Assembly: GCA_002104905.1 (NCBI GenBank)
Contig: MCFE01000295.1
Coordinates: 1-64,000, forward strand
Origin: Basidiobolus meristosporus CBS 931.73
Taxonomy: Eukaryota > Fungi > Basidiobolomycota
Reading direction: 5' to 3'
Length of the DNA: 64,000 nucleotides
The notes below the pieces were generated by a model, which saw nothing but the letters and a program-made list of their open reading frames with translations, was not told where the DNA came from and did not search any database. Each line of letters begins with the position of its first letter. Positions within the stretch are counted from its first letter, which is position 1. Made by a program: the position numbers and the translations under genes. Shown here one piece after another: positions 834-64,000 of this stretch.

Positions 834-840
834 TATAAAA
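834..840 (+). promoter_or_regulatory. Probable TATA box of the Gly/Asn repeat gene
   Basis: TATAAAA about 115 nt upstream of the ATG at 955, followed by a pyrimidine-rich leader. Confidence 0.5.
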
Positions 841-954
841 GGGAGAGATTTTCGTTGGAGTGACCGCACCGACTTATTATCTGCATAATATTCTTTATCT
901 AGATACCCGAACAATCTCTTCTCTTTACTTTAATTTACGCTACTTTAATCCACT

Positions 955-3621
955 ATGAAATTCTCCGCACCAAAACTCCTCTGCATCCTGTCCGGCGTTG
1001 CTGCCATCAACTCCGCCACCATCGATCGTCGCTTTTGGGCACGAAGCAATGGCGCTTACGATGTGACCGATGTGTTCAACGGTGGTGACTCCGGTGGTGC
1101 AAGAAACGGTGGTGCGCCCGATTATGCAGGAAATGGAGCCGGTAATGGCGGTGGAGGAAACGGTGGAAACGGCGGCTATGGCCCAGGCAATGGCGGAGGT
1201 AATGGTGGTGACAACGGAGGGAGCGGTGGTAACGGAGGAGGCAATGGTGGTGCCGGAGGCTATGACACCGGAAATGGTGGCAATGGTGGCGACAATGGTG
1301 GAAACGGTGGAGGAAATGGAGGAAGCGGCGGCTATGGTCCTAGCAACGGAGGAGGTAACGGTGGTGACAACGGCGGCAATGGAGGAGGCAATGGTGGTGC
1401 TGGCGCTTACGACTCTGGCAACGGCGGTGGTAATGGTGGTGACAACGGTGGAAGCGGCAATGGAGGTAGCGGCGGTTATGGTCCTGGTAACGGCGGAGGA
1501 AATGGTGGCGGTAACGGAGGAGGCAATGGCGGTGACAACGGAGGAAACGGAGGTGGCAATGGCGGCGTTGGTGCCTACGACACCGGAAATGGCGGTGGCA
1601 ACGGTGGAAATGGCGGTGCTGGTGGTTACGGTCCTAGTAATGGTGGTGGAAACGGTGGTGACAACGGTGGAAACGGAGGCGGCAATGGTGGCGCTGGATC
1701 TTACGACACTGGAAACGGCGGTGGCAACGGCGGTAATGGTGGCGACAACGGTGGTAACGGTGGAGGCAATGGCGGCAATAACGGAGGAAATGGTGGTGCT
1801 GGAGCTTACGATACTGGAAACGGTGGTGGAAATGGCGGTAACGGTGGTGACAACGGAGGAAATGGTGGTGGTAATGGCGGTGCAAACGGTGGTGATAACG
1901 GAGGTAACGGCGGCAATGGAGGTGGTAATGGCGGTGCTGGTGGTTACGACACTGGAAACGGCGGTGGCAACGGTGGTGACAATGGTGGAAATGGCGGTGG
2001 CAATGGTGGTGCCGGCGGCTATGGCCCTGGCAACGGTGGAGGAAATGGAGGAGACAACGGTGGTAACGGCGGCAATGGTGGTGGTAACGGCGGTGCCGGA
2101 GCATACGACACTGGAAACGGCGGAGGTAACGGCGGCAATGGCGGTGACAACGGTGGAAATGGTGGTAGCAACGGCGGCGCTGGCGGCTATGGTCCTGGTA
2201 ATGGTGGAGGAAATGGCGGCGATAACAGCGGCAACGGCGGAGGTAATGGTGGTGCTGGAGCTTACGACACTGGAAACGGTGGTAACGGAGGCGGTAATGG
2301 TGGAGACAATGGTGGAGCTGGCGGCTATGGTCCTGGTAATGGTGGAGGAAACGGTGGTGATAACGGAGGCAACGGCGGCAATGGAGGTGGTAATGGCGGA
2401 GCCGGCGCTTACGACACTGGAAACGGCGGCGGTAACGGTGGCGACAATAGCGGAAATGGCGGTGCAGGCGGCTACGGCCCTGGTAACGGTGGAGGAAATG
2501 GCGGCGACAACGGCGGTAATGGAGGTGGCAATGGTGGCGCTGGAGCTTATGACACCGGAAACGGCGGCGGCAATGGCGGTAACGGTGGTGACAATGGTGG
2601 AAATGGCGGTGGCAACGGCGGTGCAGGCGGCTATGGCCCTGGTAACGGTGGAGGAAATGGTGGCGATAATGGTGGCGATAATGGTGGCGATAATGGTGGC
2701 AACGGCGGAGGTAACGGCGGGGCTGGCAATGGTGGTGCTGGAGCTTACGACACTGGAAACGGCGGTGGCAATGGCGGCAACGGTGGTGACAATGGTGGAA
2801 ATGGTGGTGGTAACGGTGGCGCAGGCGGCTATGGCCCTGGTAACGGTGGAGGAAATGGTGGCGATAATGGTGGTAACGGCGGTGCCGGCAATGGTGGAGC
2901 TGGAGCCTACGACACTGGAAACGGCGGTGGTAACGGCGGCAATGGCGGAGACAACGGTGGTAATGGAGGAGGCAGCGGTGGTGCTGGTGGCTATGGTCCT
3001 GGTAATGGTGGAGGAAACGGTGGTGATAACGGAGGCAACGGCGGCAATGGAGGTGGTAATGGCGGAGCCGGCGCTTACGACACTGGAAACGGCGGCGGTA
3101 ACGGTGGTGACAATGGTGGAAATGGCGGTGGCAACGGCGGTGCAGGTGGCTACGGCCCTGGTAACGGTGGAGGAAATGGCGGCGACAACGGCGGTAATGG
3201 AGGTGGCAATGGTGGCGCTGGAGCTTATGACACCGGAAACGGCGGCGGCAATGGCGGTAACGGTGGTGACAATGGTGGAAATGGCGGTGGTAACGGCGGT
3301 GCAGGCGGCTATGGCCCTGGCAATGGCGGAGGAAATGGTGGCGATAACGGCGGAAATGGTGGTGGCAATGGCGGTAACGGTGGTGACAATGGTGGAAATG
3401 GCGGTGGTAACGGCGGTGCAGGCGGCTATGGCCCTGGCAATGGCGGAGGAAATGGTGGCGATAACGGCGGAAATGGTGGTGGCAACGGTGGAGCTGGCGG
3501 TTATGGTCCTGGCAACGGTGGAGGAAACGGCGGTGGAAGCGGTCAAGAACCTGACTGCGATGATAATGGAGCCGGAAATGGTGGTCATGGTGGAGCTTAC
3601 AATGCCCATTCGGACTTGTGA
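955..3621 (+). CDS. Secreted Gly/Asn/Asp/Tyr tandem-repeat protein, 888 aa, intronless
   Basis: N-terminal signal peptide MKFSAPKLLCILSGVAAINSA, a dibasic RR site, then about 830 aa of GNGGGNGGDN spacers with alternating GAGGYGPGN and GAGAYDTGN motifs. TATA upstream, AATAAA near 3693. Confidence 0.9.
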   Translation: MKFSAPKLLCILSGVAAINSATIDRRFWARSNGAYDVTDVFNGGDSGGARNGGAPDYAGNGAGNGGGGNGGNGGYGPGNGGGNGGDNGGSGGNGGGNGGAGGYDTGNGGNGGDNGGNGGGNGGSGGYGPSNGGGNGGDNGGNGGGNGGAGAYDSGNGGGNGGDNGGSGNGGSGGYGPGNGGGNGGGNGGGNGGDNGGNGGGNGGVGAYDTGNGGGNGGNGGAGGYGPSNGGGNGGDNGGNGGGNGGAGSYDTGNGGGNGGNGGDNGGNGGGNGGNNGGNGGAGAYDTGNGGGNGGNGGDNGGNGGGNGGANGGDNGGNGGNGGGNGGAGGYDTGNGGGNGGDNGGNGGGNGGAGGYGPGNGGGNGGDNGGNGGNGGGNGGAGAYDTGNGGGNGGNGGDNGGNGGSNGGAGGYGPGNGGGNGGDNSGNGGGNGGAGAYDTGNGGNGGGNGGDNGGAGGYGPGNGGGNGGDNGGNGGNGGGNGGAGAYDTGNGGGNGGDNSGNGGAGGYGPGNGGGNGGDNGGNGGGNGGAGAYDTGNGGGNGGNGGDNGGNGGGNGGAGGYGPGNGGGNGGDNGGDNGGDNGGNGGGNGGAGNGGAGAYDTGNGGGNGGNGGDNGGNGGGNGGAGGYGPGNGGGNGGDNGGNGGAGNGGAGAYDTGNGGGNGGNGGDNGGNGGGSGGAGGYGPGNGGGNGGDNGGNGGNGGGNGGAGAYDTGNGGGNGGDNGGNGGGNGGAGGYGPGNGGGNGGDNGGNGGGNGGAGAYDTGNGGGNGGNGGDNGGNGGGNGGAGGYGPGNGGGNGGDNGGNGGGNGGNGGDNGGNGGGNGGAGGYGPGNGGGNGGDNGGNGGGNGGAGGYGPGNGGGNGGGSGQEPDCDDNGAGNGGHGGAYNAHSDL

Positions 3622-3828
3622 TACTGCTTGTTAGCAAATTAGTTACCTCTATCCATATGAATACTCCCATTAATCCTTGTATTTTAATCCGGAATAAAAC
3701 AACTATAGCCTTATGCACATATGATGTCTAGAATTTTTTACGTGTTTTAATGTGGTTACTATACATGATGGACTGAGTATTATACAACAGGTAAATTAAT
3801 CGCGCGAATGCCAGCGATATGAAATAAC

Positions 3829-4861
3829 TCAAGTATATAAGTAGCACCGTAAATCCCGCCTTGGCCGATATGCTGGTGGCAACTCGTCTCTGGATGCGAC
3901 TATATCGTCGTAGTCTGGCAGAGCGTTTGCCAACGCATACTGTGCAGCAGACTGAATAATGATCGGTAACTCCAGCTCGACATAGCCATGCTTACCACCT
4001 CTATCCATGAATTTTACTCTGACGTGCACACAGTGCTTGACCGAGATGAACCCAGTTGAACAATGTGTGTTGGCACTGGATGGAATGACCAGTCTCATTT
4101 TATCAGATTGTGCTGGGCTCATCAACATAGCTTTCGAAAGATCAAACGTTTCCGTCAATGTCACCCGAGTGCCGGGGTGCTTGTATACTCTGGTTTCCAT
4201 AAGGTTAAGATCCACCTTGATCACTTGCGCGCCAGGCTCGATCTGAAAGCTCATGGCTAAGGCCAGCGCTTCGCCGGCCAAGTACACAGACTTTCGTACA
4301 GAGAGGTTGTATTGAACCATATGCTTCCAATGGCCCCTGGCGGAGTTTTTCAATCGACCGAAGGCCTCATAATAACATAGCCGCTGTATCTTGAGCTCCT
4401 GACTGTACCTCAGGTTCGTGTGAGGAAAAGGGCGAATCACAATCGCGCTCAGGGTGTAGGTGACCTTACCATGTGGTAAGTCTATCGATTCTGGTAGATC
4501 ACCCTTCAACGGTAAATTAAAGTCAAAATGATGCTCCTGTGTGTCGAATTGATACGATGGGTTGGAAGGGGTGGAGGAGTCGAATAATACTAGGGTCCTA
4601 TGCACCACCGTTGTCTTGTCCCCGTGAACGTCTGCTCGGAAGTAAGTAGATTAGCAATAAGGTCACGACGCGTGTAATTCACCAGGTTCTACCTTGATTA
4701 GTATCGACACTAATCGTTCCGTGTAATTTAAGAGTGATCTGCCTTACTTTGGTTGCTTTGGAGGGTCGGAAGACTACGGTTCCCGACACAATGGTCCCAG
4801 AGCAATCATCTGGAGAGCCGCGCAGAAATACGTTGTCATCATTCAACCGGATGCTCAACAT
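3829..4861 (-). CDS. Alpha-arrestin 1, 323 aa, 2 exons (intron 4632-4692)
   Basis: Arrestin_N start (IRLNDDNVFLRG...SGTVVF...VRQITLKLHG), FDFNLPLKGDLPES...YTL motif, C-terminal LPDY and LPPAY motifs. GT...CTAAT...AG splicing restores a 972-nt frame. Confidence 0.9.
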
Positions 4862-6039: not shown

Positions 6040-7131
6040 CTAGAATGCTTGAGCCAGAACGGGACCAACAATAAGCGGGGTCTTCTCCTCATAAGGGGGC
6101 GGCCGAGCTTCGGTTTGGTTGGCTGGATTATGAGTCGAGCACGAGAAGTGCTCATAGCTAGGCGGAGACTGAGAAAGTTCGTACTGGGCTTCGGAGCGGA
6201 TGGCAAAGGGAATGCTGATATAGAACCACCAGCGGCGTTTATAACTGTCGTGGAGCTTTACTTTGGCCACCAACATATGAGAAACCTCGATCACATCGGT
6301 ACGGCAGTCGGGTTGAGCCGAATCAGGGACTTGAATCATCATTGAATACTCCGCCAGTCCAGCGCCAAATTTTGGTACGGGTCGAGTGATCTCACACAAC
6401 TTCTCCGTCTCGAACTCCGGGCGAAGCGACAGATCAGAGAATCGGGCTACTTCTTTGATGGATAGAGAAATCTCGGAGATGACGAAATATGCGTCGTGAA
6501 TGAAAAAGGAAAACTGAAGTGGGACCGTATCACCCGGGAAATATTGACCTCTGGGGATGGTGGCTGTATAACCAAGACTATTAGCCCATCGGCCAACACA
6601 TGAGATTTTCCCCGCCATATCTCCACTGAAATCGTAGTGAGCTCGTTGGACTTTGACCAACTCCGTTTTACGAATGTTTCGCAGAAGCGAAGGCCGCTCA
6701 ATCGTAGCTGTGAGTCGATAAGAGATTCGACCGTTTGGAACATTCACCGACACCGGGTCGTCGCCCTTAAGGGGATACTCGAAAGGGAATTCGTAGGATT
6801 TATCTGCTTGTAGGGTGTGCAATGAATCCCCGGGGCTCAAGAAACTCCATTGATGTTCGAGAAAGGGCACCCGCTGCCAGGTTTCTAAAAAGCGATTCGT
6901 ATGAGCAAAACATATTCGGCAGAGCCGGGAAGAAATCCAAATACCTCGAAGATTCTTAAGTTCGATCATGCCGGTAAAGTGGAGACTGACTGACTTTGCT
7001 TTGAGAGCTTTACTTGGGGTGATGATGAGCGTGCCATAGAGTACACTTCCCACTGATTCCTCTGGCAAGCCATGAAGAATAACCGGGTCATCCCGCAAGC
7101 GGATTTCAATCATACTGTCATTTGAATTCAT
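6040..7131 (-). CDS. Alpha-arrestin 2, about 343 aa, with a probable 60-nt in-frame intron (6885-6944)
   Basis: Arrestin fold motifs (YEFPFEYPLKGDDPVS...ISYRLTATIERP) and C-terminal PPSY and PPPY. GTATTT...GCTCAT...TTTAG lies at the same phase-1 position as the introns of arrestins 1 and 4. Confidence 0.9.
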   Translation of the reverse strand: MNSNDSMIEIRLRDDPVILHGLPEESVGSVLYGTLIITPSKALKAKSVSLHFTGMIELKNLRGIWISSRLCRICFAHTNRFLETWQRVPFLEHQWSFLSPGDSLHTLQADKSYEFPFEYPLKGDDPVSVNVPNGRISYRLTATIERPSLLRNIRKTELVKVQRAHYDFSGDMAGKISCVGRWANSLGYTATIPRGQYFPGDTVPLQFSFFIHDAYFVISEISLSIKEVARFSDLSLRPEFETEKLCEITRPVPKFGAGLAEYSMMIQVPDSAQPDCRTDVIEVSHMLVAKVKLHDSYKRRWWFYISIPFAIRSEAQYELSQSPPSYEHFSCSTHNPANQTEARPPPYEEKTPLIVGPVLAQAF

Positions 7132-7973
7132 TAATAGCTAAGCATACAGAATAGGGTGGAGTGTTAGTGATGCCACCGTCAGCAGTGGCATATCCTTTTA
7201 TACGCTGCAGTTTCTCCAACCCCAAGCTTGGATATTACATGAGCGAAACTGTGAAACAACCAGTGTGAAATTGGGTTTTACTGAAATCAGTAGGAGTGAT
7301 TCTATTAATGTTGAGTGGGAACTAGAATCCATGTGTCACGTAGAGAGATAAAGAGCAATGAAATATACAGCTCTATTCGCACTCAACAATATGGGCCAAA
7401 TCTGTCAATGATGACAATGGCGAAAACATTGACTAACCATAGACCGGAAGAGAAACTAGTTCACCATAAACCGGAAGAGAAACTAGTTCATTTCACTTTC
7501 GTGGCCCCAATAAATCTGATCATGTGGGCTCGATCTACACTGTCAAAGTATTCCAGTATTTCCAATTCCTGGATGATTCACACAGTTAGAGAAACATGTG
7601 CTATTCGGAGTGTGCCTAATCGAGCAATGGTAATACACTGCGAAAGTATACCAGTACTTCCAATCAAGAATTGCCAATTCCTGGATGATCTACCCATTTA
7701 GAGAAATATGTACTATTCGGAGAGTGTGCCCAATCTAGCAATAGTATTTTCCTTTACTGGGTGCGAGGGAGTGGCCAGAGACCACATTTATGGACATCAA
7801 CTCCATTGACTGCATAAAATCATCGCCACTCTATCCTCTATAGTGCAAATCCCGAACCAGTGTCACATCACGGCATTCAGATCTTCGATGGAAGAACCTC
7901 TAGGTAACGAGGTGCCATTGCAACTTTGGATAAAAACCGTACATCTTTCTTCATCTCGCATTTTTCTCCACCA

Positions 7974-8924
7974 ATGCGGCTGTTGGATTTAGTTCCTCTC
8001 TCCCTTACATTCTCGCTTCTTTCTAATGCCGAGCCATCCCGTTTCACGTTTAGCCAAACTTGGTCGCCCAAATCTCTAAGCCTAACGGAGTGGAATTACA
8101 ACAGCGGATCAAAAAGCTCCTTCAATAGCGTGTCGACAACGAATGATCCATTCAGCACAGATGGGGGGAAGTGCTATAGTGTATTTTTTGCAAAGCAGAG
8201 CTACGGCGTGGATGGCAACAATGATAGCGGAGTGCACGCGAATTTCAAACCATTGCAGGATCAACATGCCAACAGAGCGATGATCAGCTACGAACTTGCA
8301 TTCCCAGATAACTTTACTTGGGTATTGGGAGGGAAGCTTCCAGGCATCTCTGGTGGATGGGGAGATCTAGGGTGTACCGGTGGTCGTGAGGCCAACGGTC
8401 ACAATTGTTTCTCTGTTCGTCTGATGTGGCGTGAGGGTGGAGTTGGGGAAATCTACACATATTTACCCAGGGCCCTCAACAAAAACCTCTGCTCTAGATC
8501 CGATGTTGTGTGCAATGCCGATTACGGAATCTCTGCTGGTCGAAACTTTCAGTTCCGAACCGGAAAATGGATGAAAGTGGATCTATTTGTGCAGCTAAAT
8601 ACCCTTGATAGGTCCGACGGGTACATGAAGCTTTACATGAATGACAGGTTGGTCATAGACCTGTCTGGGCTGATATATCGCTCTGAAGACACCATGTACG
8701 CTGACATGCTCGCCTTCAGCTCATTTTTTGGTGGCTCTACCCCTGCCTATGCGCCTCCCGCTGACACGAACGTTTTCATCAAGAATCTCCGCTTTCAAAC
8801 TGACCAGGACTACCTGGACCATAATCTAATAACGTTAGACAGCTCGTCAGGCACCCCCTCTCCTTCAACAGCTCTCTTCGGTATTTCACTCCTTTCTGCA
8901 CTGCTTTTATTGAGTCTGAATTAA
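7974..8924 (+). CDS. Polysaccharide lyase family 14 (alginate/glucuronan lyase-like), secreted and probably GPI-anchored
   Basis: Signal peptide from ATG 7974. FPDNFTWVLGGKLPG and FSVRLMWREGGVGEIYTYLP motifs typical of fungal PL14, FFGGS motif, Ser-rich linker and hydrophobic C-terminal tail. Confidence 0.85.
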   Translation: MRLLDLVPLSLTFSLLSNAEPSRFTFSQTWSPKSLSLTEWNYNSGSKSSFNSVSTTNDPFSTDGGKCYSVFFAKQSYGVDGNNDSGVHANFKPLQDQHANRAMISYELAFPDNFTWVLGGKLPGISGGWGDLGCTGGREANGHNCFSVRLMWREGGVGEIYTYLPRALNKNLCSRSDVVCNADYGISAGRNFQFRTGKWMKVDLFVQLNTLDRSDGYMKLYMNDRLVIDLSGLIYRSEDTMYADMLAFSSFFGGSTPAYAPPADTNVFIKNLRFQTDQDYLDHNLITLDSSSGTPSPSTALFGISLLSALLLLSLN

Positions 8925-10650: not shown

Positions 10651-11370
10651 TTACATCAATGCATATGCAAAGGCCATGCTTACCAACCCCAGGAGGGTGA
10701 TGGCAGTATGCTGAGAAGCATCACTTGGCTTACTGATAGAAGGAGAGATGTTGGCAGGCTTGGTCGAGGTAGGGGCTTGGTTTGTGGACCGAACAGAGGA
10801 AGCCATGGAGGCAGTGCCAGATGAGGTGACTGATCCGCTGGAGGTCGGCTTGCTGGTTGCTGATGTGCTATTAGTCGCCGAAGCGGATGGAGACTTTGTG
10901 TCTTTGCTGGCAGTACCACTAGCGCTTGGCGACTGTTTGGATGAGGCAGCATCACCACTACCAGCCGACAGTTCGAAGTATGGACTGTATGATACCTGAC
11001 TACCTGCGCTAGCCCGGATCGCATAATCCTTACCTGGGGTCAGGGTTGCGGGGATTTTCCATTCGTATTGGCCTTTGCTTGAATCCACTCCTTTGGCAAT
11101 TTCAATGACCGGCTGGAGCGCGGTGGCAGGGCCACTCATCAAGTACAAGTCAAAAGTAGCAGCCATTTTCGGTTCAACACCATTATCGATCCTTGATGGA
11201 AACGGTAAGCTCAATGGTGCAATCAAGTGAAGTAATCAGATAACCTACCAGGTAATGATCTGGGTGGTGGACTCCTGCCATGTGGCCATAAGTGGGGAGG
11301 TGATGGATACCTCACTCTTTACCACAGTGGCGAGCACGAGAGCGGCAGCGGCGAAAGATCTTAGAAACAT
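10651..11370 (-). CDS. Ser/Thr-rich GPI-anchored cell-wall protein with a Kre9/Knh1-like N-terminal domain, 220 aa (intron 11192-11248)
   Basis: Signal peptide MFLRSFAAAALVLA, then IITW-IDNG...FDLYLMSG...YEWKIPATL..GKDYAI...SYSPYF domain, S/T-rich stalk and hydrophobic tail. Confidence 0.88.
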
Positions 11371-12571: not shown

Positions 12572-13160
12572 GCATTGGCGACCATGAATAAAGACATTCT
12601 TTTCTTGCTGATTTGCTGCCACATACAGTGTCGTTGTGGAGATGTGGGATTTCCCAGGTGCGTTCCGATTCATTCGTACCAGTTTCAACCGTTTTCGTCA
12701 AAGGTGAGAATGGCCACACTGTCTGTTTCCAAGGGATTCTTCGTTGCATATCCAATCGGTTCAGTGTACCTGGTTGGTGGGTTGTTCGGGTCGAAAATTC
12801 TGGATTGGTTGGCAACTCCCAGGATAATCGTCCTGTTGGTCATATTAGGAAAACCATCTTCTCACACATACTTGCAAGCCAATACAGCCAGCCAATTCCG
12901 CATGAAATAACGGTGACTGCCCCACATCACGTGAGAGGATAAAAATGGGACTTTACGGATGAAAACATCCACACCACATCCACAGTTGTCTTGACGTCTA
13001 GACCAAAAGGATCAGTAGGAGTAGGAATGTTAACGTACTCACGGACAGGGTTTCCGAAACCAATCTTCTTTTGGAAAGAAAACCTGTACTCTTCAATGCC
13101 TTCCACCGATATATAAAGCCATGGCTCACTCCTAACCTATCCCTTGTCCGATTTCCACAC

Positions 13161-14102
13161 ATGTCAAACACCATTGAAATACTCCTCGATAATCCATATC
13201 TGGCTCTATACGGCTTGTCATCAGTCTCTGCAGGGAAGGCGCTCAGAGGCACGGTAATCATGCGTCTAAACCGGGTGACAAGAGTCAAATCGTTGGTGTT
13301 GAACTTCCTGGGGGAGATGGATGTTCATTGGATTTACAGTTCGGCATTGCTGAACACCAAGTGTCGGTTCAGAAATTTGTTGGTTGACCGTACCCTTAGT
13401 CTCTTGGAACCTGGCCCTGACTATCATACCCTACCCGCTGGTAACCATAGATTCCCGTTCGAGCTCGCGCTGCCTGGAGACATGACTGAGACGATCAGCA
13501 CCAAGGTGGTTCGCTGTAAGTACCTCCTCACCGCAGTGGCTGAACAACCGCGGTTTTGGAATAGACTCGAGACCAGGCAGGAGGTGATAATAAAGCGGTT
13601 TTATCCTCACGACGATGATCCTATCGTGTTATCCGAGGTGATCCCGGATTTCATGGAGATCACCGTCTTCGTAAATCAGAAGGTGTATGGTCTGGGTGAT
13701 ATCATCCCTGTATGCATTCAATGTAATCCTGCCGCCGATCACGTGATGACGCGGATCAGCTCCTCCATCAAAGAGGTCGTCACCTACCGAAAGCCGAAGA
13801 GTACCAAGGTGAACACGCAAAACCGGTGGTCCCCAGCGGTGTTTGAGGAAAAGTTCGAGCCGACCCCCGCTGAGAAAACCCTGTACATCCCGATCCATTC
13901 CACCCGACTAAATTCGGACTGCTTGACAGAGGTGATGGATACCAAGCACGAGATCGTAATCAAGATAGAGGCGAAACTAACGAAGGGCCAAACCACCCAC
14001 ACAGCAAATCACGTCTTAAAAATCCCTGTACTGATACTTTCGGACGCCTATAAGAAGGTTTATGAGGAATTACCGGCATATAATCCGGTCTGCGGTTGTT
14101 GA
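13161..14102 (+). CDS. Alpha-arrestin 3, 313 aa, intronless
   Basis: IEILLDN...LRGTVIMRL...VKSLVLNFLG, LPAGNHRFPFELALPGDMTET and C-terminal LPAY motifs. Confidence 0.9.
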   Translation: MSNTIEILLDNPYLALYGLSSVSAGKALRGTVIMRLNRVTRVKSLVLNFLGEMDVHWIYSSALLNTKCRFRNLLVDRTLSLLEPGPDYHTLPAGNHRFPFELALPGDMTETISTKVVRCKYLLTAVAEQPRFWNRLETRQEVIIKRFYPHDDDPIVLSEVIPDFMEITVFVNQKVYGLGDIIPVCIQCNPAADHVMTRISSSIKEVVTYRKPKSTKVNTQNRWSPAVFEEKFEPTPAEKTLYIPIHSTRLNSDCLTEVMDTKHEIVIKIEAKLTKGQTTHTANHVLKIPVLILSDAYKKVYEELPAYNPVCGC

Positions 14103-16381: not shown

Positions 16382-17510
16382 TCATGATGGTGTAGGTGGT
16401 AGTGAGTGGCTGAGGATCCCTTCGTATGTCGGGGCATAGGCGTTGAAGAGAGTGTCGTAGGAGGGAGGTAGCGAGGCCAGAGAGATGCGTCTTTCGATTG
16501 CTCGATAGGGAGGCAGGTCCAAAAAGATCTCCTGGCTAGAGCCCGAAACAATCACCACTGGGATACCGACGTAGACTGCTTTGACCACTCCGGGGGAGAG
16601 ACGAAACTCGATTTTCACCTTGAGTTTATGTCGGACATGTATCAGCTCTGTCATGCAGTCGCATTGGACGGCCTCGCTGGGTGACGGGATCTCAAGGGTT
16701 AGCTGGTTCTCCCAATTGCTCTGCGTTTTGGTGAAGTCCGTGGTGGAGAGTCTGGTTATCCATCGTGTCTGCAGCTTGCAACGGCCGCCACCCGCCACCC
16801 TATACGTGATATATTCTTTCAGCAGGCAGGATACTTTTCGCAAACTCAGGTCTTCCGACATCAACAAGATGTTGAACCGAATCGGGAGATTTTCCCCTGG
16901 GCCAAAGGCCTTGGATGGTATATGAACATCATACGCCAGTTTATCATTCCAGACCTCAGCGATGCTCACAGATTGAATAAGCTCCGTCGACGAAGACAAT
17001 GCGAACCGTTTGATGACCACCTCTTTCTCCACTATATAATTGGTGCAAAATGTGGGCCGTTCAATGGTTGCTCGCAGTTTGTATTTAACTGTGCCATACT
17101 CAGTATGGACTGTCTCCGGGAGGTTTCCGCTGAGTGCTATCTCGAATGGGTAGGTATGCTCCCCCTTCCCCAAGACTATTGGCTTCTTACTCGCCTCGAC
17201 GAAAGTCCATTGGTTCGACACCAGGGTGCGAGTCTCGTTCTTTGGGTTGCTCTTTACTCCAGGTACTAAAAAGGTGGCAAGCATTAGCCAGGAAGATTGG
17301 GGTGGCGTAAAACAAAGACAAGCTACCGTCATCCCAGCAAACCTTCATCTTCCCTTCCAAACGGAGGGACACGATTTTAACCTTGAGCGCCTCTGGGAGG
17401 AGGATCTTCAGGTCACCACGCAACACGGCGCCTGCTGACTCGTGTGCCGGTCCGTTAAATATCAGACATTCACTGGTAGGCCGGATTTCAATGTTCGGCG
17501 TTCGACTCAT
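16382..17510 (-). CDS. Alpha-arrestin 4, 355 aa, 2 exons (intron 17266-17326)
   Basis: IEIRP...LRGDLKI...VKIVSLRLEG, GEHTYPFEIALSGNLPETV...VKYKLRATIERP and C-terminal LPPY/PPSY motifs. Confidence 0.92.
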
Positions 17511-32600: not shown

Positions 32601-35600
32601 TCACTTCTGGGATATTCCTGAGCACTGATTCTGTCTGAACCACAGTTGTAGAGTCCTCTGGAGTGAAAAAATTTTCATTGTTTGCTCTGATTCAATCCTG
32701 AAAATTGGTGGACTTGAGATCAAATTCCGTCATCATCTGATGTCATTTTTTGTGAAAATTTTGAATTTTCATCAAACAACACATCCCTTGACTTGATTGG
32801 CTTCTTTGCTTTGGTATTGTAGAGTCTGTATGCTTTACTCTCATTGCAGTAGCCCAAAAATATGCATTTCACACTTTTTGGCACAAATTTTGACTGATTT
32901 CCGGCCAGTTTTTTGGCATATGCTGTACAGCCAAATATTCTTAGATGTTCTGCACTTGGTCTGTATCCATACAATGCTTCAAATGGAGTAGAATCACAAA
33001 GTATTCTGTTATAACTCCTATTTTTCAGGAATACAGCAGTGGCAACCGATTCCGCCCAAAAATCATAGGATAATTTTTGATCATGGATCATAGATCCTGC
33101 CATATCAATTATTGATCTGTTAGCCTGTTCTGCTACTCCATTTTGCTGTGGGGAGTATGGCACAGTAGTCTCTTGCTTTATCCCATGAATTTTGCAGAAG
33201 TGGATGAAGAGTTTTGAGGTATATTCTCCACCATTGTCAGAGCATATTTTCTTGATTTTTTCACCAGTTTCTCTCTCTATCATGGCTTTCAACTCCTTGA
33301 GCTTAGACAGAGCTTCTTCCTTTCTCTCCATGATGTAGACCCATGTGTATCTTGTATAATCATCAATAAAAGTGATTAAATACTTCATCCTGCCTAAGGA
33401 TAAATTTTGCATAGGTCCACACAGATCTGAGTTAATTAGATCTAATTTTTTCTTAGTTTTGATCAACCCAGAGCTCTTGAACAGTTGTCTGGCTTGTTTC
33501 CCATATATGCAGGCTTCACAGTGTTCCAAATTTGCTGGGGGATCAATTTTTACTCCAGAAATTAGCTGATCTTTGATCATTTTGCACAAATAATCAAAAT
33601 TGATGTGCCCAAATCTCCTGTGCCAAAGCATTGGTATTTCTTCATTTAAGTTATTTATATTGGCTTCCAAATATGATGGAATATAAGTCAACTTGTATAG
33701 GTTCTGATCTCTGATACCCAAAGCAATAAGGGCACCATTTTGATCTGTGATCTTGCATCCTAAATTGTCAAAGCTGAAACTGAGTCCTTCTGCAGTGGCC
33801 TTGCTTACAGATAGTAGGTTCTTGGCTATATCTGGTACATAGAGTACTTCTTTAAAGGTCAGTGTATGGCTTCCTTCACTGCTTCTTAGGTTTACTTGGA
33901 TATTTCCTTCTCCCACTGCATCAAGTGTTCTATTGTCACCCATGAAAACTTTCTTGATTGGAATTTCTTGATATTGGGTAAAAAGTTCTTTTTGGTGTGC
34001 AAAGTGTTTAAATGCTCCAGAGTCAATATACCATGTCTGAGAATCCTTGTTTGTGGTCATATTTAGCTCAGATATGAATTGTCTATCTTCAGTTTTGGCA
34101 GCATTTCCATATTCAGGCTTCTTTTGCTGATTATCTTTCTTTATTGAGACACCAGTCTGATGTGTGTCCTTTCCTTTTGCAGTACTTACAAAACAGATTG
34201 CTGTTGCCTTTGTAAGGTCTTGGGTACCTCCTTTGTTGGTTATCATTGCTTATTAAAACATTTTCTTCTTCCTTCTTATTAGCTCTTGATTTTCTTAATT
34301 CTTCATCCAGGAGCCTTCCATATATGTAATTTAAGGTCAAATCTTCAGTTCTGGACTCTAGGGCTGATACAAGGCCCTGAGACTTGTCTGTAGGCTATTC
34401 AGGATGGTAACTATCACATCCTCATCAGTAGTTGGTATGCCCACAGATTCCATCTCATCTACCAGCAGGGTAATTCTGTTAATTAGATTTTTCATTTCTT
34501 CTCCTGGCAGCATCTTTGTAGTAAAGAATATCCATCTCAGATACATTTTCTTAGCACCTGAACATGACTGGTAGGTGTCTTCTAATGCCTTCCAGGCATT
34601 CTTTGCTGTTTTTGCTCTTGAGCATTGAATTAGCAATTTGTCCTTGACATTAAGGCAAATGCAGTTAAAGGCACTTGTTCTTTCTTCTGGTAATTTAGGC
34701 TTCCTCTGCCATGTTTTTAGGAGGGCATTCTTCTCCCATGACAATATCCCAAAGGCCTCTTTCTTGTAGCAGCATCTTCATCTTCACCTTCCATACTTGG
34801 TAGTTAGATCCATTCAACTTTTCAGCAGAGGGAAAAGTTCCAGTAATAGCAATACTAGACATTGCAGAGAGTGACAGCTCAGGGCTCATAGCCTGTTGTA
34901 AGAGTCTTGGAGATATTGGAAGTGATTTGGAGAACAAGTAGATTATGTGGTTTTCACTTAATGATTTATTAAATATAAAAGTAGTGTTTATACTTTTACC
35001 TGGTCTTGGCACTACAAACACATTGAGTAGGTCAAAAAAGGTCCCAAGAACATGTGTGCAAAGTTCAGGGCTGTTTGGACAACTTTGAGAATTTTCATGA
35101 TCTGGGTACCTGGTATTTTGGTGAAAATATTCTAAGTAAATCCCAACAAGGAATTTGGTCAGTATCCTCTAAGATTTGAAGGTAGTGATCTAAATGACTA
35201 AGTTAGGTGAGTATTTAGGTGGAATTAAGAATTTTTACAACAATATCAGTATCATGCCTCAATGGAGCAGAATCAAAAAGTAATCTGCTTTAACTTTTAT
35301 ATTTAGGTTATACAGCTGTGGCAACTGATCTGGCCTACATATCAAAGGATTATTCTTGATCATGGAACATAGATCTTGCCATATCAACTATTGATCTGTT
35401 TGCCTATTCTGCTATTCCACTTTGCTGTGGGGAATACAGCACAGTAGTATCTTGCATTATACTATGAATATTGCAGAAGTAGATGTAGACTTTTGCGGTA
35501 TATTTGCTACTTATAAGTAAATCCTGACAAGAAATATGGTCAGTACTTACTACAATATGTTGATCATGATCTAAATGACTAAATTAGGTGAGTATATAGG

Positions 35601-49630: not shown

Positions 49631-52600
49631 TGTTGAAATATTGGACTATTTGGTATCATTCAGCAGCTAAAAATTTACTTAACAATTCTAGGCTAGTCTT
49701 AGTCACTGTAGGACTCATTTACTGCCTTAACTTTGCCACTTTCTCCGGATATATGATCTTATGATTATTCCCCTATAGTCAGGATCAAATTAGCACTATT
49801 ACCAAACATTATGTACTAACCCTGAAACTGTTACAGAATGCTCCTGAATATTGAGAAACCCTCCTTACTTAGTGTTACAGCTGTATTACTTCTACAAAGG
49901 TATAAATACTGAGCGTCTTTATGAATAAACAACAGTTCAACTATTATCACTATTTCTTGATAAGTTCCTTATATCCAAATCACTTCTTAAATTGCAACTG
50001 GTTATGAGCCCCAATTGCCTTAATCTATTCTAAAGATGACTTCTACCAGCAAACAAAGCAATACCAACATCTTCCCTGTAAAGGAGAGGTTTGATGGGAA
50101 GAACTACAGACTTTGGAGAATCAAGATGCAGATCCACCTTGAGGAAAGAAAGCTTTGGAACATAGTAACAGGAAAGGAAGTTGAGCCCAAAGGAACAGCA
50201 GAAGATTTGGAGAAGTTTCAAGAGAAGGAGAGAAAGGCCTTCAATGCAATATGCATCAATGTGCAAGACTCCTTCATTGGACAAATCCATGCCTCAAATA
50301 CTGCCAAAGCAGCATGGAAATCCTTGGAGAAGATCTTTAGAGCAAAGTCAGTATCAAGCAAGCTTTATTTGAAACAAAAGTTCTTCAACATGAGAAAAAA
50401 GCCAGATGATGACATGCTACAACTCATTACCAGAATGGAGACACTTGCAGAAGAACTTTACAGTATTAATGCTGGTGTAGATGATGAAGAAAAGATACTC
50501 TGTCTGCTTTGCAGCCTACCAGACGAGTATGAGCCACTCATACTTTCTTTAGAAAGCAGAGAAGACAACTTGACTTTAGACTATGTCAAAGGAAGACTTC
50601 TCCATGAAGAACTCAGACGTAATGACCAAGCAGAGAAAATTGAAGATAATGCTTTATTCAGTTCAGAAAGGCATACAGAAAAGAAGGGAAAGCAACAAAA
50701 CCAAAGAAAACCTGGCTGCTGTAACTACTGTAAGAAGCCAGGACACTGGGCAAGAGAATGCAAGAAGAAACAAGCAGACAAAAAACAGAAACTACAGCAG
50801 GCAAACCATATAACTACTGATGAACAGCTATTTGTCACTGTACAAGAGAGTGCAAGTAACTGAAGAAATGAATGGTATATTGACTCTGGAGCATCACAGC
50901 ATATTTGTGGTATAAAGGATTGGTTCAGCAACTTAAAGACTATTCCTGTAAGAAAGGTTTATCTGGGAGATAACTCTGCATTGGAAGCTACCGCCAGTGG
51001 GTCTATACAACTAAATATGAGTGATAACTCAGGGGCAACAACAGCAAAACTGACTGACGTACTCTATGTACCTGGAATAGCTAAGAACCTACTTTCAGTC
51101 AGTAAAGCAACTACTCAGGGACTGAAATTTGTTTTTACTAAGCTGAGCTGCTCAATATTGAGTGAAAATGGACAAAAATTAGCATTGGGAATCAGAGATC
51201 ACAATATATCCAAGTTACAATGCAAGACCATTGTACCTGAGTATGTCAACATTGCTGAAACTGATGAAACCAACTGGGAGACGTGGCATAGGAGGCTAGG
51301 ACACATAGGGGAACAGAAAATGAGCCAATTGGTGAAAAATCAGCTTGTTTTGGGCCTAAAATACTCAATTCCAATCAAATTGAATGTTTGTAAGGGATGT
51401 TCATATGGCAAACAAGCTAGGCAACGTTTCAAGAGCTCAGAAGGCATCAATACCACCGAAATATTGGCTATTGTACACTCAGACATATGTGGCCCCTTGA
51501 GAACACTGTCCTTTGGAGCCAAGAGATACTTTATGACGTTTATTGATGACAAGACAAGATATACATGGGTGTACTTTCTCAAAACAAAGGATGAAGCTTT
51601 AGAGATGTTTAAGCACTTCAAGAACATGGCAAAAACACAAACTGGGTGTAAATTGAAGGTACTACAAAGTGACAATGGAGGAGAATACTGCTCAAAGGAG
51701 TTTGCAAAATACTGCTTGTCTACTGGTATACTTCAACAGACCACAGTTCCTCATACTCCACAGCAAAATGGAGTAGCAGAACGTGCAAATAGAACAATAG
51801 TAGAGATGGGAAGATCTATGCTACATGATAAGGGAATGGACTACAAGTTTTGGGCTGAATCTGTTGCTACCGCTGTATACATCAAGAACAGATACCCAAC
51901 AACAGCACTACGTGATTCTACACCCTTTGAAGCATATACAGGCAAAAAACCAGATCTCCAGCACCTCAGGATCTTTGGCAGTGATGTTTTTTATCACATC
52001 CCTGACAAAAAACGCTCAAAGTTGGAACCAAAGAGTAGAAAAGGGATCTTTCTTGGGTATTGTGAAGATACTAAAGGGTATAGAGTGTATGATGGCAAAA
52101 TTCAGAAGCTGATCAAGAGCAGGGACGTTGTATTTGAGGAGAATTCAGATCAGAAAGCCACAGAAATCATTGGCCAGCTGCCTGATGATGCAATCAACAC
52201 AAATGAAGAAGATACGTACCAAATCCAGCCAGAGATGGAAGATACTTCTACCAGTTCCAGATCAGAACAGATTATCCCAGTTAGGAGATCTACCAGAATA
52301 AGAAATGCCCCTGGATCCTGGTGGCAGACATCCAATGATCATGAAGAAGCTTATCTTGCCTTATGTGCCAAACCTCAGAATCTGGAACAGGCAATGCAAG
52401 GCCCAGATGCTACTAAGTGGCAACAAGCCATGCAGGAGGAGTACCAATCACTGATCAAGGCAAAAACGTGGGAACTGGTAGATTTACCAAATGGGAGAAA
52501 GCCAATAGGATGTAGATGGGTCTACAAGATCAAGATAACCTCAAATGGTGCCGTTGATAAGTACAAGGCTAGATTGGTAGCTAAAGGCTATTCCCAGATC

Positions 52601-54316
52601 CAGGGACTAGACTTTAAGGAAACATTTGCTCTGGTTGCCAAGTTTAACTCTATTAGGACAGTTCTAGCCCTGGCAGCTGTACACAGCCTAGATCTACACC
52701 AAATGGACGTCAAAACAGCCTTTCTAAATGGGGATTTGCAAGAAACTATATATATGGAGCAACCAGCAGGTTTTACCGATCCAAAAAGCCCCCACAAGGT
52801 GTGCAAACTTAGAAAATCGTTGTATGGGCTTAAGCAGGCACCCAGAGCATGGTATAACAAGATTGACACATATCTAGAGGAAATTGGGTTCTCTCGTAGC
52901 ACTGCAGTTCACAGTATATATGTGAAACAGCTCAAAAAGGGTGTGATCATCCTAGTTCTTTATGTGGATGACCTAATTATAGCTACAAGTGATCAAGAGG
53001 CACTTAAACATACAAAATCAGATCTCTTCAGCAAGTTTGAGATGAAAGATCTTGGAAAATTGAGCTTTTTTCTTGGAATTGAGGTCAAATTTGACATACC
53101 TACACAGAAAATTGTGCTGAATCAGTCTAAGTACATCAGGGACACTCTTAGACGCTTCAAAATGGAAAATTGCAAACCTGCAGCAACCCCTATGGACAAT
53201 AACCTGAAATTAAGCAAATCTCAGCCAGTTATAGATGAAAACGGCTCAAATATGGACCAAAACTTTCACTATCAATCAATGGTTAGTAGCCTGATGTACT
53301 TGATGGTGTCTACACGTCCAGATATTGCAGTAGCAGTTGGAATAGTCAGTCAATTCATGCAGAACTATGGATCAGATCAAATTGCAGCAGTTAAGCGGAT
53401 TTTCAGATATCTACAAGGTACCATAAATATGGTACTGGAATACTCTGGAGCAGCTAATAGGCAAAAATTTGATGGTTATAGTGATTCAGATTGGGGTAGA
53501 GATTTGATTGACAGACGCTCTACCACAGGCTATGTATTTCTTTATGCTGGTGCAGCTATTACTTGGAATTGCAAGAAACAACCAACTGTGGCACTATCTA
53601 CAACTGAAGCCAAATATATGGCTGCATGTCAAGCAACTAAGGAGGCTATATGGCTATGAAAATTATTCAAAGACTTAGGTTTTAATTCAGGTGAACCAAC
53701 ATGCATTTACAAGGATAATCAAAGTTGTATTTCATTAGCTAGAAATCCTACTAATCATGCCAGAACTAAGCACATTGATATACAGCATCACTTTGTGAGG
53801 GAAGCTGTAGAAAATAACTTAGTGGAGCTGGTTTACTGCCCAACTGACAAAATGGTGGCAGACATATTGACAAAACCACTAGCTAGGCCACAGTTTGAGA
53901 TCCTTAGGGAGAAATTGGGATTAAGAAATTATTTAGTTGAGGGGGAGTGTTGAAATATTGGACTATTTGGTATCATTCAGCAGCTAAAAATTTACTTAAC
54001 AATTCTAGGCTAGTCTTAGTCACTGTAGGACTCATTTACTGCCTTAACTTTGCCACTTTCTCCAAATATATGATCTTATGATTATTCCCCTATAGTCAGG
54101 ATCAAATTAGCACTATTACCAAACATTATGTACTAACCCTGAAACTGTTACAGAATGCTCCTGAATATTGAGAAACCCTCCCTACTTAGTGTTGCAGCTG
54201 TATTACTTCTACAAAGGTATAAATACTGAGCTTCTTTAAGAATAAATAACAGTTCAACTATTATCACTATTTCTTGATAAGTTCCTTATATCCAAATCAC
54301 TTCTTAAATTGTAACA
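49631..54316 (+). mobile_element. Full-length young Ty1/copia element (family B); 369-bp LTRs at 49631-49999 and 53948-54316; TSD TTACC; single gag-pol frame 50036-53953 with two premature TGA
   Basis: PBS GGTTATGAGCCC, PPT TTGAGGGGGAG, CCHC knuckle (CNYCKKPGHWAREC), WYIDSGA, HRRLGH, HSDICGP, LYVDD, GYSDSDW. In-frame stops at 50861 and 53657. About 9 LTR mismatches by eye. Confidence 0.96.
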
Positions 54317-54939: not shown

Positions 54940-57225
54940 ATCACATAGTGCTGTTGTTGGGCATCTGTCCTAGATGTAAACTGCGGTAGCAACTGATTCA
55001 GCCCAAAACTTGTAGTCCATTCCCTTATCATGTAGCATAGATCTTCCCATCTCTACTATTGTTCTATTTGCACGTTCTGCTACTCCATTTTGCTGTGGAG
55101 TATGAGGAACTGTGGTCTGTTGAAGTATACCAGTAGACAAGCAGTATTTTGCAAACTCCTTTGAGCAGTATTCTCCTCCATTGTCACTTTGTAGTACCTT
55201 CAATTTACACCCAGTTTGTGTTTTTGCCATGTTCTTGAAGTGCTTAAACGTCTCTAAAGCTTCATCCTTTGTTTTGAGGAAGTACACCCATGTATATCTT
55301 GTCTTGTCATCAATAAACGTCATAAAGTATCTCTTGGCTCCAAAGGACAGTGTTCTCATGGGGCCACATATGTCTGAGTGTACAATAGCCAATATTTTGG
55401 TGGTATTGATGCCTTCTGAGCTCTTGAAATGTTGCCTAGCTTGTTTGCCATTTGAACATCCCTTACAAACATTCAATTTGATTGGAATTGATTATTTTAG
55501 GCCCAAAACAAGCTGATTTTTCACCAATTGGCTCATTTTCTGTTCCCCTATGTGTCCTAGCCTCCTATGCCACGTCTCCCAGTTGGTTTCATCAGTTCCA
55601 GCAATGTTAACATACTCAGGTACAGTGATCTTGCATTGTAACTTGTATATATTGTGATCTCTGATTCCCAAAGCTGATTTTTGTCCATTTTCACTCAAAA
55701 TTGAGCAGCTCAGCTTAGTAAAAACAAATTTCAGTCCCTGAGTAGTTGCTTTACTGACTGAGAGTAGGTTCTTAGCTATTCCAGGTACATAGAGTACGTC
55801 AGTTAGTTTTGCTGTTGTTGCCCCTGAGTTAGCACTCATATTTAGTTGTATAGACCCACTGGCGGTAGCTTCCAATGCAGAGTTATCTCCCAGATAAACC
55901 TTTCTTACAGGAATAGTCTTTAAGTTGCTGAACCAATCCTTTATACCACCAATATGCTGTGATGCTCCAGAGTCAATATACCATTCATTACTTTGGTTAC
56001 TTGCACTCTCTTGTACAGTGACAAATAACTGTTCATCTGTAGTTATATGGTTTGCCTGCTCTAGTTTCTGTTTTTTGTCTGCTTGTTTCTTCTTGCATTC
56101 TCTTGCCCAGTGTCCTGGCTTCTTACAGTAGTTACAGCAGCCAGGTTTTCTTCGGTTTTGTTGCTTTCCCTTCTTTTCTGTATGCCTTTCTGAACTGAAT
56201 AAAGCATTATCTTCAGTTTTCTCTGCTTGATCTTTACGTTTGAGTTCTTCATGGAGAAGTCTTTCTTTGACATAGTCTAAGGTCAAGTTGTCTTCTCTGC
56301 TTTCAAAAGAAAGTATGAGTGGCTCATACTTGTCTGGTAGGCTGCAAAGCAGACAGAGTATCTTTTCTTCATCATCTACACCAGCATTAATACTGTAAAG
56401 TTCTTCTGCAAGTGTCTCCATTCTGGTAATGAGTTGTAGCATGTCATCATCTGGCTTTTTTCTCATGTTGAAAAACTTTTGTTTCAAATAAAGCTTGCTT
56501 GATACTGACTTTGCTCTAAAGATCTTCTCCAAGGATTTCCATGCTGCTTTGGCAGTATTTGAGGCATGGATTTGTCCAAAGAAGGAGTCTTGCACATTGA
56601 TGCATATTGCTTTGAAGGCCTTTCTCTCCTTCTCTTGAAACTTCTCCACATCTTCTGCTGTTCCTTTGGGCTCAACTTCCTTTCCTGTTACTATGTTCCA
56701 AAGCTTTCTTTCCTCAAGGTGGATCTGCATCTTGATTCTCCAAAGTCTGTAGTTCTTCTAATCAAACCTCTCCTTTACAGGGAAGATGTTGGTATTGCTT
56801 TGTTTGCTGGTAGAAGTCATCTTGAGAATAGATTAAGGCAATTGGGGCTCATAACCTGTTGCAATTTAAGAAGTGATTTGGATATAAGGAACTTATCAAG
56901 AAATAGTGATAATAGTTGAACTGTTGTTTATTCATAAAGACGCTCAGTATTTATACCTTTGTAGAAGTAATACAGCTGCAACACTAAGTAGGGAGGGCTT
57001 CTCAATATTCAGGAGCATTCTGTAACAGTTTCAGGGTTAGTACATAATGTTTGGTAATAGTGCTAATTTGATCCTGACTATAGGGGAATAATCATAAGAT
57101 CATATATTTGGAGAAAGTGGCAAAGTTAAGGCAGTAAATGAGTCCTACAGTGACTAAGACTATCCTAGAATTGTTAAGTAAATTTTTAGCTGCTGAATGA
57201 TACCAAATAGTCCACTATTTCAACA
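54940..57225 (-). mobile_element. 3-prime-truncated copia family-B copy (LTR 56857-57225, gag, PR, partial integrase)
   Basis: Near-identical reverse complement of 49631-51920; PBS at 56845-56856. Confidence 0.93.
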
Positions 57226-62045: not shown

Positions 62046-64000
62046 TACTAATTTTGTCTGTTTAAGTGCCTCTTGGTCACTTGTAGCTATAATTAGGTCA
62101 TCCACATAAAGAACTAGGGTGATCACACCCTTTTTGGGCTGTTTCACATAAATACTGTGATCTGCAGTGCTACAAGAGAGCCCAATTTCCTCTAGATATG
62201 TGTCAATCTTGTTATACTCTGCTTTAGGTGCCTTTTTAAGCCTATACAACAGTTTCTATGTTTGCACATGTTATGGGGGTCTTCTGGATTGGTATACCCT
62301 TCTGGTTGCTCCATATATATAGTTTCTTGCAAATCCCCATTTAGAAAGGCTGTTTTGACATCCATTTAATATAGATCGGAACTATGTGCAGCTGCCATGG
62401 CTGGAACTGTCCTGACAGAGTTAAACTTGGCAACTGGAGCAAATGCTTCCTTAAAGTCTAGTCCCTGGATCTGGGAATAGCCTTCAGCCACCAATCTAGC
62501 CTTGTACTCATCAATGGCACCATTTGAGGTTATCTTGATCTTGTAGATCCATCTACATCCTATTGGCTTTCTTCCATCTGGTAAATCTACCAGTTTGCAT
62601 GTTTTAGCCTTGATCAGTGATTGGTACTCCTCCTGCATGGCTTGTTGCCACATTGTAGCATCTAGACTTTGCATTGCCTGTTCCAGATTCTGGGGTTTGG
62701 CACATAAGGCAAGAGAAGCTTCTTTGTGATCATTGGATGTCTGCCACCAGGATCCAGGGGCATTTCTTATTCTGGTGGATCTCCTAACTGGGATAATCTG
62801 CTCTGATCTGGAACTTGTAGAATTATCTGCAGTATCAGGCTGATTTGGTACGTATCTTCTTCATTAGTTTTGATTGCATCATCAGGTAGCTGGCCAATGA
62901 TTTCAGTGGCTTTGTGATTTGAATTCTTCTCAAATACAACATCCCTACTGCTGAGCAGCTTCTGAGTCTTGCCATCATACACCCTATACCCTTTAGTATC
63001 TCCACAATACCCAAGAAAGTTCCCTTTCTTACTCTTAAACTGCAGTAGTAACAGATTCAGCCCAAATCCTGTAGTCCATTCCCTTATCATGTAGCATAGA
63101 TCTTCCCATCTCTACTATTGTTGTATTTGCACATTCTGCTACTCCATTTTGCTGTGGAGTATGAGGAACTGTGGTTTGTTGAAGTATACCAGTAGATGAG
63201 CAGTATTTTGTAAACTCATTTGAGCAGTATTCTTCTCCATTGTCACTTTGTAGTACCTACAATTTACACCCAGTTTGTGTTTCTGCCATGTTCTTGAAGT
63301 GATTAAACGTCTCTAACACTTCATCCTTCGTTTTGAGGAAGTAAACCCATGTATTTCTTGTTTTATCATACTGTCATAAAGTATCTCTTGGCTCAAAAAA
63401 ACAGTGTTCTCATGGGGTCACATATGTCTCAGTGTACAATAGCCAATATTTTGTTGGTATTGATGCCTTCAAGCTCTTGAACATTGTCTAGATTGTTTGC
63501 CATGTGAACATTGCTTACAAACATTCAACTTGATTGGAATTGAGTATTTTAGGCCCAAAACCAGCTGATTTTCACCAATTGGCCCATTTTCTGATGCCAA
63601 ATGTGCCCTAGCCTTCTATGCCATGTCTCCCAGTTGGTTCTATCAGTTTCAGCAACATTGACATACTCAGGCACAATGATCTTGCATTGTAACTTGTATA
63701 CATTGTGATCTCTGATTCCCAAAGCTGATTTTTCTCCATTCTCACTCAATATTGAGCAGCTCATCTTAGTAAAGACAAATTTCAGTCCCTGAGCAGTTGC
63801 TTTACTGACTGAGAGCAGGTTCCTGGCTATTCCAGGTACATAGAGTATGTCAGTCAGTCTTGCTGTTGTTACCCCTGAGCTATTGCTCATATTAAGTTGT
63901 ATGGACCCACTGGCAGTAGCTTCCAGAGCAGAGTTATCACCCAGATAAACCTTTCTTACAGGAATAGTCTTTAAGTTGCTGAACCACTCCTTTATACTAA
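62046..64000 (-). mobile_element. Older, internally deleted copia family-B copy, running off the window
   Basis: PR/integrase/RT fragments (62040..62249, 62366..62674, 63549..63890) homologous to 50930-53020, with more CpG loss. Confidence 0.9.

Follow-up and report, generated by a model that had tools for sequence, protein, structure and literature searches.

GGYGPG is a turn motif typical of elastic silk (MaSp2/flagelliform) repeats. The glycine-rich wall proteins of plants combine a signal peptide with GGX/GGY repeats, are extracellular and are thought to be insolubilised via Tyr. In resilin, exon 1 consists of 18 copies of GGRPSDSYGAPGGGN, in which Tyr is the cross-link residue, and recombinant resilin repeats form gels of 93-97% resilience once their Tyr residues have been cross-linked (PMC9999432). 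GN-type repeats are also found in fungi, as N-terminal extensions or spacers in the class II hydrophobins HCf-6 and QID3 and in the multipartite hydrophobins of Claviceps (PMC2253510). Here, a Gly-Asn-Tyr repeat gene of the fungus Basidiobolus meristosporus CBS 931.73 was analysed within a stretch of 64,000 nucleotides (contig MCFE01000295.1 of assembly GCA_002104905.1, positions 1 to 64,000 of the forward strand; referred to as the window). The gene encodes an acidic polypeptide with 29 regularly placed Tyr units of two alternating types behind a predicted signal peptide, its peptide sequence is held by purifying selection, and its recognised relatives are two proteins of Basidiobolus ranarum. 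It may contribute to a network outside the cell.

The open reading frame (ORF) at 955..3621 on the plus strand is single and uninterrupted, comprising 888 codons followed by a stop codon and encoding 888 amino acids, at exactly the position at which the first-pass annotation, made from the DNA letters and an ORF list, had placed a Tyr-repeat ORF. The features of the gene and of the encoded protein are given below.

834..843, plus strand: TATA-box-like TATAAAAGGG, 112-121 bp 5' of the ATG; putative role, from position only
955..3621, plus strand: complete single-exon coding sequence, from the ORF list, the codon-position test and the ATG context CCACTATGA, with A at -3
955..1017, plus strand: signal-peptide-like N-terminus, residues 1-21, with K2, K7 and the hydrophobic core LLCILSGVAAI, by rule-based hydropathy
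1018..1080, plus strand: conserved non-repeat module, residues 22-42 (TIDRRFWARSNGAYDVTDVFN), containing RR and the only Trp, from alignments to the two B. ranarum proteins
1081..3516, plus strand: repeat array rich in Gly, Asn and Asp (residues 43-854), containing the 29 Tyr units and one GGDNGG-type acidic spacer per unit
3517..3618, plus strand: C-terminal tail, residues 855-888 (…SGQEPDCDDNGAGNGGHGGAYNAHSDL), with no hydrophobic stretch
3556..3558, plus strand: codon of Cys868, the mature chain's sole Cys, a candidate for disulfide bonding between molecules
3693..3698, plus strand: AATAAA, polyadenylation-signal-like, 72 bp 3' of the stop codon; putative role
940..3609, minus strand: antisense ORF of 889 codons, exactly aligned with the codons of the plus-strand gene

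Selection on the coding frame was assessed by comparing the repeat units with one another across all 65 pairs of the same length (1729 codon pairs). Differences were found 106, 128 and 913 times at codon positions 1, 2 and 3, respectively, and the 1016 differing codon pairs comprised 808 synonymous and 208 non-synonymous pairs in the plus frame, compared with 20 and 996 in the antisense frame. Amino acid identity among the units was 88%, internal DNA repeats were merely 71-88% identical, and sites carrying the same amino acid used an identical codon in 46.9% of cases, against the 41% expected from a random draw under the gene's own codon usage. The repeat units are therefore old, with silent sites that are saturated and a plus-frame peptide that has been held constant. 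Purifying selection thus acts on the Gly/Asn/Tyr peptide of the plus frame, which is not a young minisatellite, and the antisense ORF, which would encode a Thr/Ser/Ala/Ile/Val-rich protein, is an artefact of GGN and AAY codons and not a selected frame, although it could mislead gene finders. The near-total avoidance of GGG (2 of 496 Gly codons), the TATA-like box, the A at -3 and the AATAAA fit an ordinary fungal gene, the functions of these elements being putative. The interval 955-3621 is very probably a real coding gene.

The 29 repeat-type Tyr units span Y75 to Y850 and comprise 15 units of type A (GAGGYGP[GS]N) and 14 of type B (GAGAYD[TS]GN), arranged in the order ABABABABBBABABABABABABABABAAA. 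Alternation between A and B occurs at 24 of the 28 junctions, against an average of 14.5 in 100,000 shuffles (P=0.00017), which bears out the earlier description of about 29 Tyr-centred units, mostly alternating, set in Gly/Asn spacers. The spacing between Tyr residues averages 27.7 residues (range 17-46) and the units, when cut after each Tyr motif, measure 17-46 residues and mostly 25 or 28, each beginning with a GGGNGG(N)GGDNGGNGGGNGG-type spacer and ending with an A or B motif; the spacers are GGGNGGDNGGNGGGNGG-like. Because the alternation is non-random, the true building block is taken to be the A+B pair of ~53 residues, in agreement with the strongest of the periods reported by Tandem Repeats Finder (159 bp, within a range of 75-198 bp). 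Three further Tyr residues (Y35, Y57 and Y882) are not part of the 29-unit array.

The 888 residues include 496 Gly (55.8%), 174 Asn (19.6%), 54 Asp (6.1%), 52 Ala (5.9%) and 32 Tyr (3.6%), with two Lys, four Arg and two Cys among the rare residues. Gly follows Asn at 169 of the 174 Asn positions, and each spacer contains about one Asp, with a further one in every B motif. Both Lys residues and Cys10 are found among residues 1-10, so that the mature protein would be devoid of Lys and would retain Cys868 as its single Cys. The mature chain, which further contains at most four Arg, one Gln and hardly any hydrophobic residues, has a mass of ~69-70 kDa, an isoelectric point (pI) of 4.05 and a net charge of about -51. 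The earlier description, with almost no Lys or Arg and a single Cys near the C-terminus, is thus essentially accurate, with the small correction that a second Cys and both Lys residues lie in the signal peptide.

The N-terminus has the n/h/c layout of a signal peptide, as first annotated, and this signal-peptide-like region is kept in all three gene copies, namely the present gene and those of the two B. ranarum proteins. Small residues are located at positions 15/17 and 18/20/21 and the -3/-1 rule is satisfied within residues 17-21, a stretch in which cleavage would be expected. By these rules the protein is probably secreted. The alignments indicate that residues 22-42 are the only non-repetitive conserved module of the protein. 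This module carries the dibasic pair RR at residues 25-26, which had been annotated as a processing site; RR is shared by the ortholog or allele from B. ranarum described below, but is RQ in the B. ranarum paralogue, and Kex2-type cleavage at this position is therefore not a feature of the family. No N-x-S/T sequon occurs anywhere in the protein.

Relatives were searched for with HMMER among 1.84 billion representative proteins (E up to 0.001), which yielded two matches. One was a true relative, KAK9709718.1 (K7432_008854) of B. ranarum, a partial protein of 96 amino acids that shows 84% identity across residues 1-48, followed by GGYGAGN and GAYDTGN units in Gly/Asn spacers. The other, a QQPGEGS-repeat protein, was rejected as a spurious low-complexity match. 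A second B. ranarum protein, K7432_011872 (103 amino acids, partial), was retrieved when the word index was searched using a short query, and its N-terminus is identical at 56 of 58 positions, for which reason it is regarded as the ortholog or an allele. K7432_008854 shares the signal peptide, the N-terminal module and the GGYG.GN/GAYDTGN units, differs by RQ in place of RR and is a different gene, and on this alignment it is assigned as a paralogue. In the alignments of both proteins the signal peptide is followed by a WAR[SD]NGAYDV[TS]DVF module and by GYG.GN and AYDTGN units, a combination that characterises an undescribed Basidiobolus Gly-Asn-Tyr family. Both B. ranarum models are marked 'partial', are ~100 amino acids long and come from short contigs (8.4 kb and 12.9 kb); they are tentatively read as the product of short-read contigs that break in the repeat, and by such breakage the family appears to be under-represented in public protein sets. 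Because these models are partial and the mature chain is without Lys, standard annotation and tryptic proteomics would miss the protein.

Wider searches returned no further relatives. A word-index search with the whole protein scored 8000 low-complexity candidates, none of which was significant, and an exact look-up of the protein and of four neighbouring ORFs showed them to be absent from a collection of 15 billion proteins. The N-terminus found no match among proteins of 488-1554 amino acids, and it follows that this collection holds no full-length model. At the DNA level, scans with degenerate patterns for AYDTGNGG and YGPGNGGGN gave one chance match in the metagenomes of the Joint Genome Institute (JGI), on a bacterial contig and outside any Gly-rich ORF, and one in 185,579 prokaryotic species genomes, in a Terriglobus metagenome-assembled genome and likewise outside any Gly-rich ORF; the YGPGNGGGN pattern gave none. 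As these matches are isolated and none falls in a Gly-rich ORF, no related repeat gene appears in the scanned JGI and prokaryotic collections, which contain few fungi. The searches thus recovered relatives only in Basidiobolus, in the form of the two B. ranarum fragments. The nearest public proteins come from B. ranarum, in keeping with the fungal origin suggested initially, and the distribution of the matches points to a lineage-specific gene that is restricted to Basidiobolus.

The first-pass annotation did not recognise the protein as a member of a described family, and this judgement stands: no Pfam family was matched over the whole 888 amino acids at E up to 0.1 (the setting of all Pfam statements in this text), no sequence in the PDB was matched at E up to 10, the ESM Atlas gave no usable match and no described family was found among the 1.84 billion HMMER targets. 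A polyglycine-II bundle of the type found in the snow-flea antifreeze protein and phage gp38 was considered as a fold and rejected, as neither the PDB search nor AlphaFold2 supports it. Searches of the literature found no paper linking Basidiobolus to glycine-rich proteins and no fungal resilin-like protein.

With regard to function, Basidiobolus discharges its spores by means of elastic energy that is stored in the cell wall and released by fracture (PMC4959704), the conidium being shot by a fluid-pressure catapult at ~150,000 g (PMC4959704; PMC13370150), and its capilliconidia bear adhesive material on the beak (PMC13370150). Discharge and capilliconidium glue would both need elastic or sticky materials, and the protein is therefore read as a candidate building block of such a network. 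According to this proposal, the ~70-kDa protein would enter the secretory pathway and leave the cell as a hydrated, disordered polyanion, in which the Gly/Asn spacers would serve as flexible, non-folding chain segments and the 29 Tyr residues, in their two alternating contexts (GGYGPGN and GAYDTGN), would be the one plentiful kind of reactive or 'sticker' side chain. Links of the transglutaminase or lysyl-oxidase type would require Lys, which is missing, and hydrophobic residues are scarce, so that only Tyr and Cys868 would be able to join chains; Tyr-cross-linked elastomers are built on the same plan. Tyr might join the chains covalently, through oxidative coupling of one Tyr to another, or through non-covalent contacts between aromatic rings, and Cys868 might link them tail-to-tail. 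A rubbery or sticky network would result, either within the wall or on its surface, and might be located in the elastic 'rocket' conidiophore wall, in the glue on the beak of the capilliconidium or in a spore coat. By analogy with the systems described above, a role as an extracellular structural or adhesive material is put at even chances, and covalent cross-linking through Tyr can be suggested only tentatively.

Several points weigh against this proposal. The signal peptide was judged by rule (hydropathy, n/h/c layout and the -3/-1 positions) and not by a trained predictor. Attachment of the protein to the wall finds no counterpart in its sequence, as no wall-anchoring or chitin-binding domain was found with Pfam and a glycosylphosphatidylinositol (GPI)-attachment signal is absent, with Kyte-Doolittle means over 15 residues reaching no more than -0.81 within the final 60 residues and a tail that ends in AYNAHSDL. 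No oxidase, peroxidase or tyrosinase gene was detected beside the repeat gene among the neighbouring ORFs with Pfam. Self-association would be disfavoured by a net charge of -51 in a chain without cationic residues, unless this were offset by Ca2+ or other counter-ions or by a polycation. Tyr residues recur every ~28 residues here and every 15 in resilin. Finally, an AlphaFold2 model calculated without an alignment had a predicted local distance difference test (pLDDT) score of 24.9 with zero residues above 50, which agrees with an intrinsically disordered chain, a single-sequence prediction being weak evidence of disorder.

The same composition could also serve a secreted protective or hydrating coat that is not cross-linked, namely a protease-resistant, strongly hydrated polyanion that would protect spores or hyphae in the amphibian or reptile gut, or from drying out, with no elastic or adhesive role. 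Trypsin-type enzymes cannot cut a mature chain with no Lys and at most four Arg, the scarcity of hydrophobic residues and the strong negative charge would suit such a coat, no gene for a cross-linking enzyme lies nearby, and Basidiobolus lives in animal guts (PMC4959704). The Tyr sites would, however, still be open to chymotrypsin and pepsin, and a coat of this kind leaves unexplained both the strict periodicity of Tyr in two alternating, conserved contexts and the conserved position of the single C-terminal Cys; it is considered rather unlikely.

Alternatively, the material could be organised by ions and not by Tyr, with GGxGxD motifs and ~54 Asp residues binding Ca2+ or a polycation such as chitosan, or the chain could form an RTX-like beta-roll. 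The 28 matches to GGxGxD, the one acidic spacer per unit and the very low pI are in line with a cation-binding matrix protein, for which, on the other side, AlphaFold2 predicts no beta-roll, and this explanation is regarded as very improbable. The RTX beta-roll itself (GGxGxDxUx) was rejected, as position 8 is hydrophobic in none of the 28 motifs (Gly in 26 and Ser in two) and there was no match to HemolysinCabind.

Known FUS-type domains are unlike strongly negative, Arg-free chains. An intracellular, prion-like or phase-separating protein of this type, in which Tyr stickers are set in Gly/Asn spacers and the N-terminus does not function as a signal peptide, would account for the Gly/Asn/Tyr-rich composition and the sticker-spacer layout, but the dissimilarity in charge counts against it, as do the conservation of the n/h/c layout in three gene copies and the lack of an RNA-binding or other intracellular domain in Pfam, and its likelihood is therefore remote. 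That the ORF is non-functional and derived from a GGN-rich minisatellite, or that the antisense ORF at 940..3609 is the real gene, might be entertained because both strands are open across the whole array, the exact protein is absent from the 15-billion-protein collection and the public B. ranarum models are merely fragments, but is scarcely credible in view of the third-position bias (913 against 106 and 128), the ratios of synonymous to non-synonymous pairs (808:208 against 20:996 in antisense), the near-randomised synonymous sites at 88% peptide identity and the conservation of the non-repeat N-terminus in paralogue and ortholog.

If the protein is a network-forming extracellular material, a broader and improbable conjecture is that Basidiobolus evolved its own resilin- and silk-like elastomers independently of animals, that the Gly-Asn-Tyr protein would be their member in the discharge wall or the capilliconidium glue, and that Asn-Gly deamidation possibly serves as a self-timing of swelling or stickiness. 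Asn-Gly is the dipeptide most prone to deamidation. Under physiological conditions it converts spontaneously to Asp or isoAsp on a time scale of hours to days, depending strongly on pH and temperature (PMC11659308). Because it contains 169 Asn-Gly sites in a disordered chain, the secreted protein should grow more acidic and more kinked. Such proteins would, if they do form an elastic or sticky network outside the cell, offer a molecular handle on the elastic discharge wall and the capilliconidium glue of Basidiobolus, both of which are poorly understood, and their simple chemistry (Gly, Asn, Asp, Ala, Tyr, Pro and Thr only) could interest biomaterials work.

The genomic neighbourhood was annotated using Pfam, and the following features were identified in the remainder of the window.

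3829-4608 (minus strand), 6040-7131 (minus strand), 13071-14102 (plus strand) and 16382-17332 (minus strand): arrestin-domain ORFs (Arrestin_N/Arrestin_C, LDB19-like)
7926-8924, plus strand: polysaccharide lyase family 14 (PL14) gene, E 4.6e-64
10651-11226, minus strand: Kre9/KNH-like wall protein with a Ser-rich stretch
32720-34246 (minus strand), 50036-53659 (plus strand) and 55492-56730 (minus strand): at least three copia-type long terminal repeat retrotransposon ORF sets, in the low-G+C half

Further neighbours include OsmC, APS kinase and SAC3. The neighbouring genes are ordinary eukaryotic genes and give no functional hint. The four arrestin-domain ORFs, which lie within 14 kb, form a local cluster of alpha-arrestin-like paralogues. 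The PL14 lyase and the Kre9/KNH-like protein, encoded a few kb from the repeat gene, are both probably secreted, and no functional link to them was found. The G+C content drops abruptly at ~26 kb, from ~0.50-0.56 to ~0.36-0.42, and does not recover before the window ends at 64000. Given this drop and the copia-type ORFs beyond it, the repeat gene is located in a gene-dense block that adjoins a transposon-rich, AT-rich block.

The repeat chemistry of the protein, with its GGYGPGN motif, periodic Tyr and Gly-rich spacers, parallels that of resilin and flagelliform silk, as had been proposed from the letters alone, and the known systems were compared with it in turn. Insect pro-resilin shares with it a Gly-rich, disordered chain whose repeats each carry a single Tyr in a YG(A)PG…GGGN context, and pro-resilin is secreted, as is predicted in the present case. 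The 29 Tyr units and the pLDDT below 50 throughout place it with the Gly-rich, disordered Tyr-repeat proteins, whereas the Rebers-Riddiford chitin-binding domain is absent by Pfam. It further differs from pro-resilin in its 20% Asn, in containing almost no Ser, Arg or Pro, in its strong acidity, in its fungal origin and in the lack of detectable homology. MaSp2 and flagelliform silk share the GGYGPG contained in the A unit GGYGPGN, whereas the Basidiobolus protein has no poly-Ala blocks and almost no Gln (one in the mature chain) and is acidic and Asn-rich; the N- and C-terminal domains of spidroins were matched neither in Pfam nor in the HMMER search of 1.84 billion proteins. The glycine-rich wall proteins of plants are alike in that nothing but Gly-rich repeats, with Tyr scattered among them, comes after the signal peptide, which is a predicted one here, but they are much shorter, have neither Asn/Asp spacers nor the alternation of two motifs, and showed no homology. 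Class II hydrophobins are likewise fungal, are secreted, as is predicted here, and carry GN-type low-complexity repeats, but their Gly-Asn repeats are short, without periodic Tyr, and joined to a hydrophobin domain, whereas here the repeats make up the whole protein; the eight-cysteine hydrophobin core is absent, with only Cys10 and Cys868 present and no Pfam match. The best reading of these comparisons is that the resemblance to resilin, silk and plant glycine-rich wall proteins reflects convergence and that the protein is a member of none of them. If they do form an elastic or sticky network, the Basidiobolus proteins would give resilin, elastic silk and the glycine-rich wall proteins of plants their first fungal counterpart defined by sequence.

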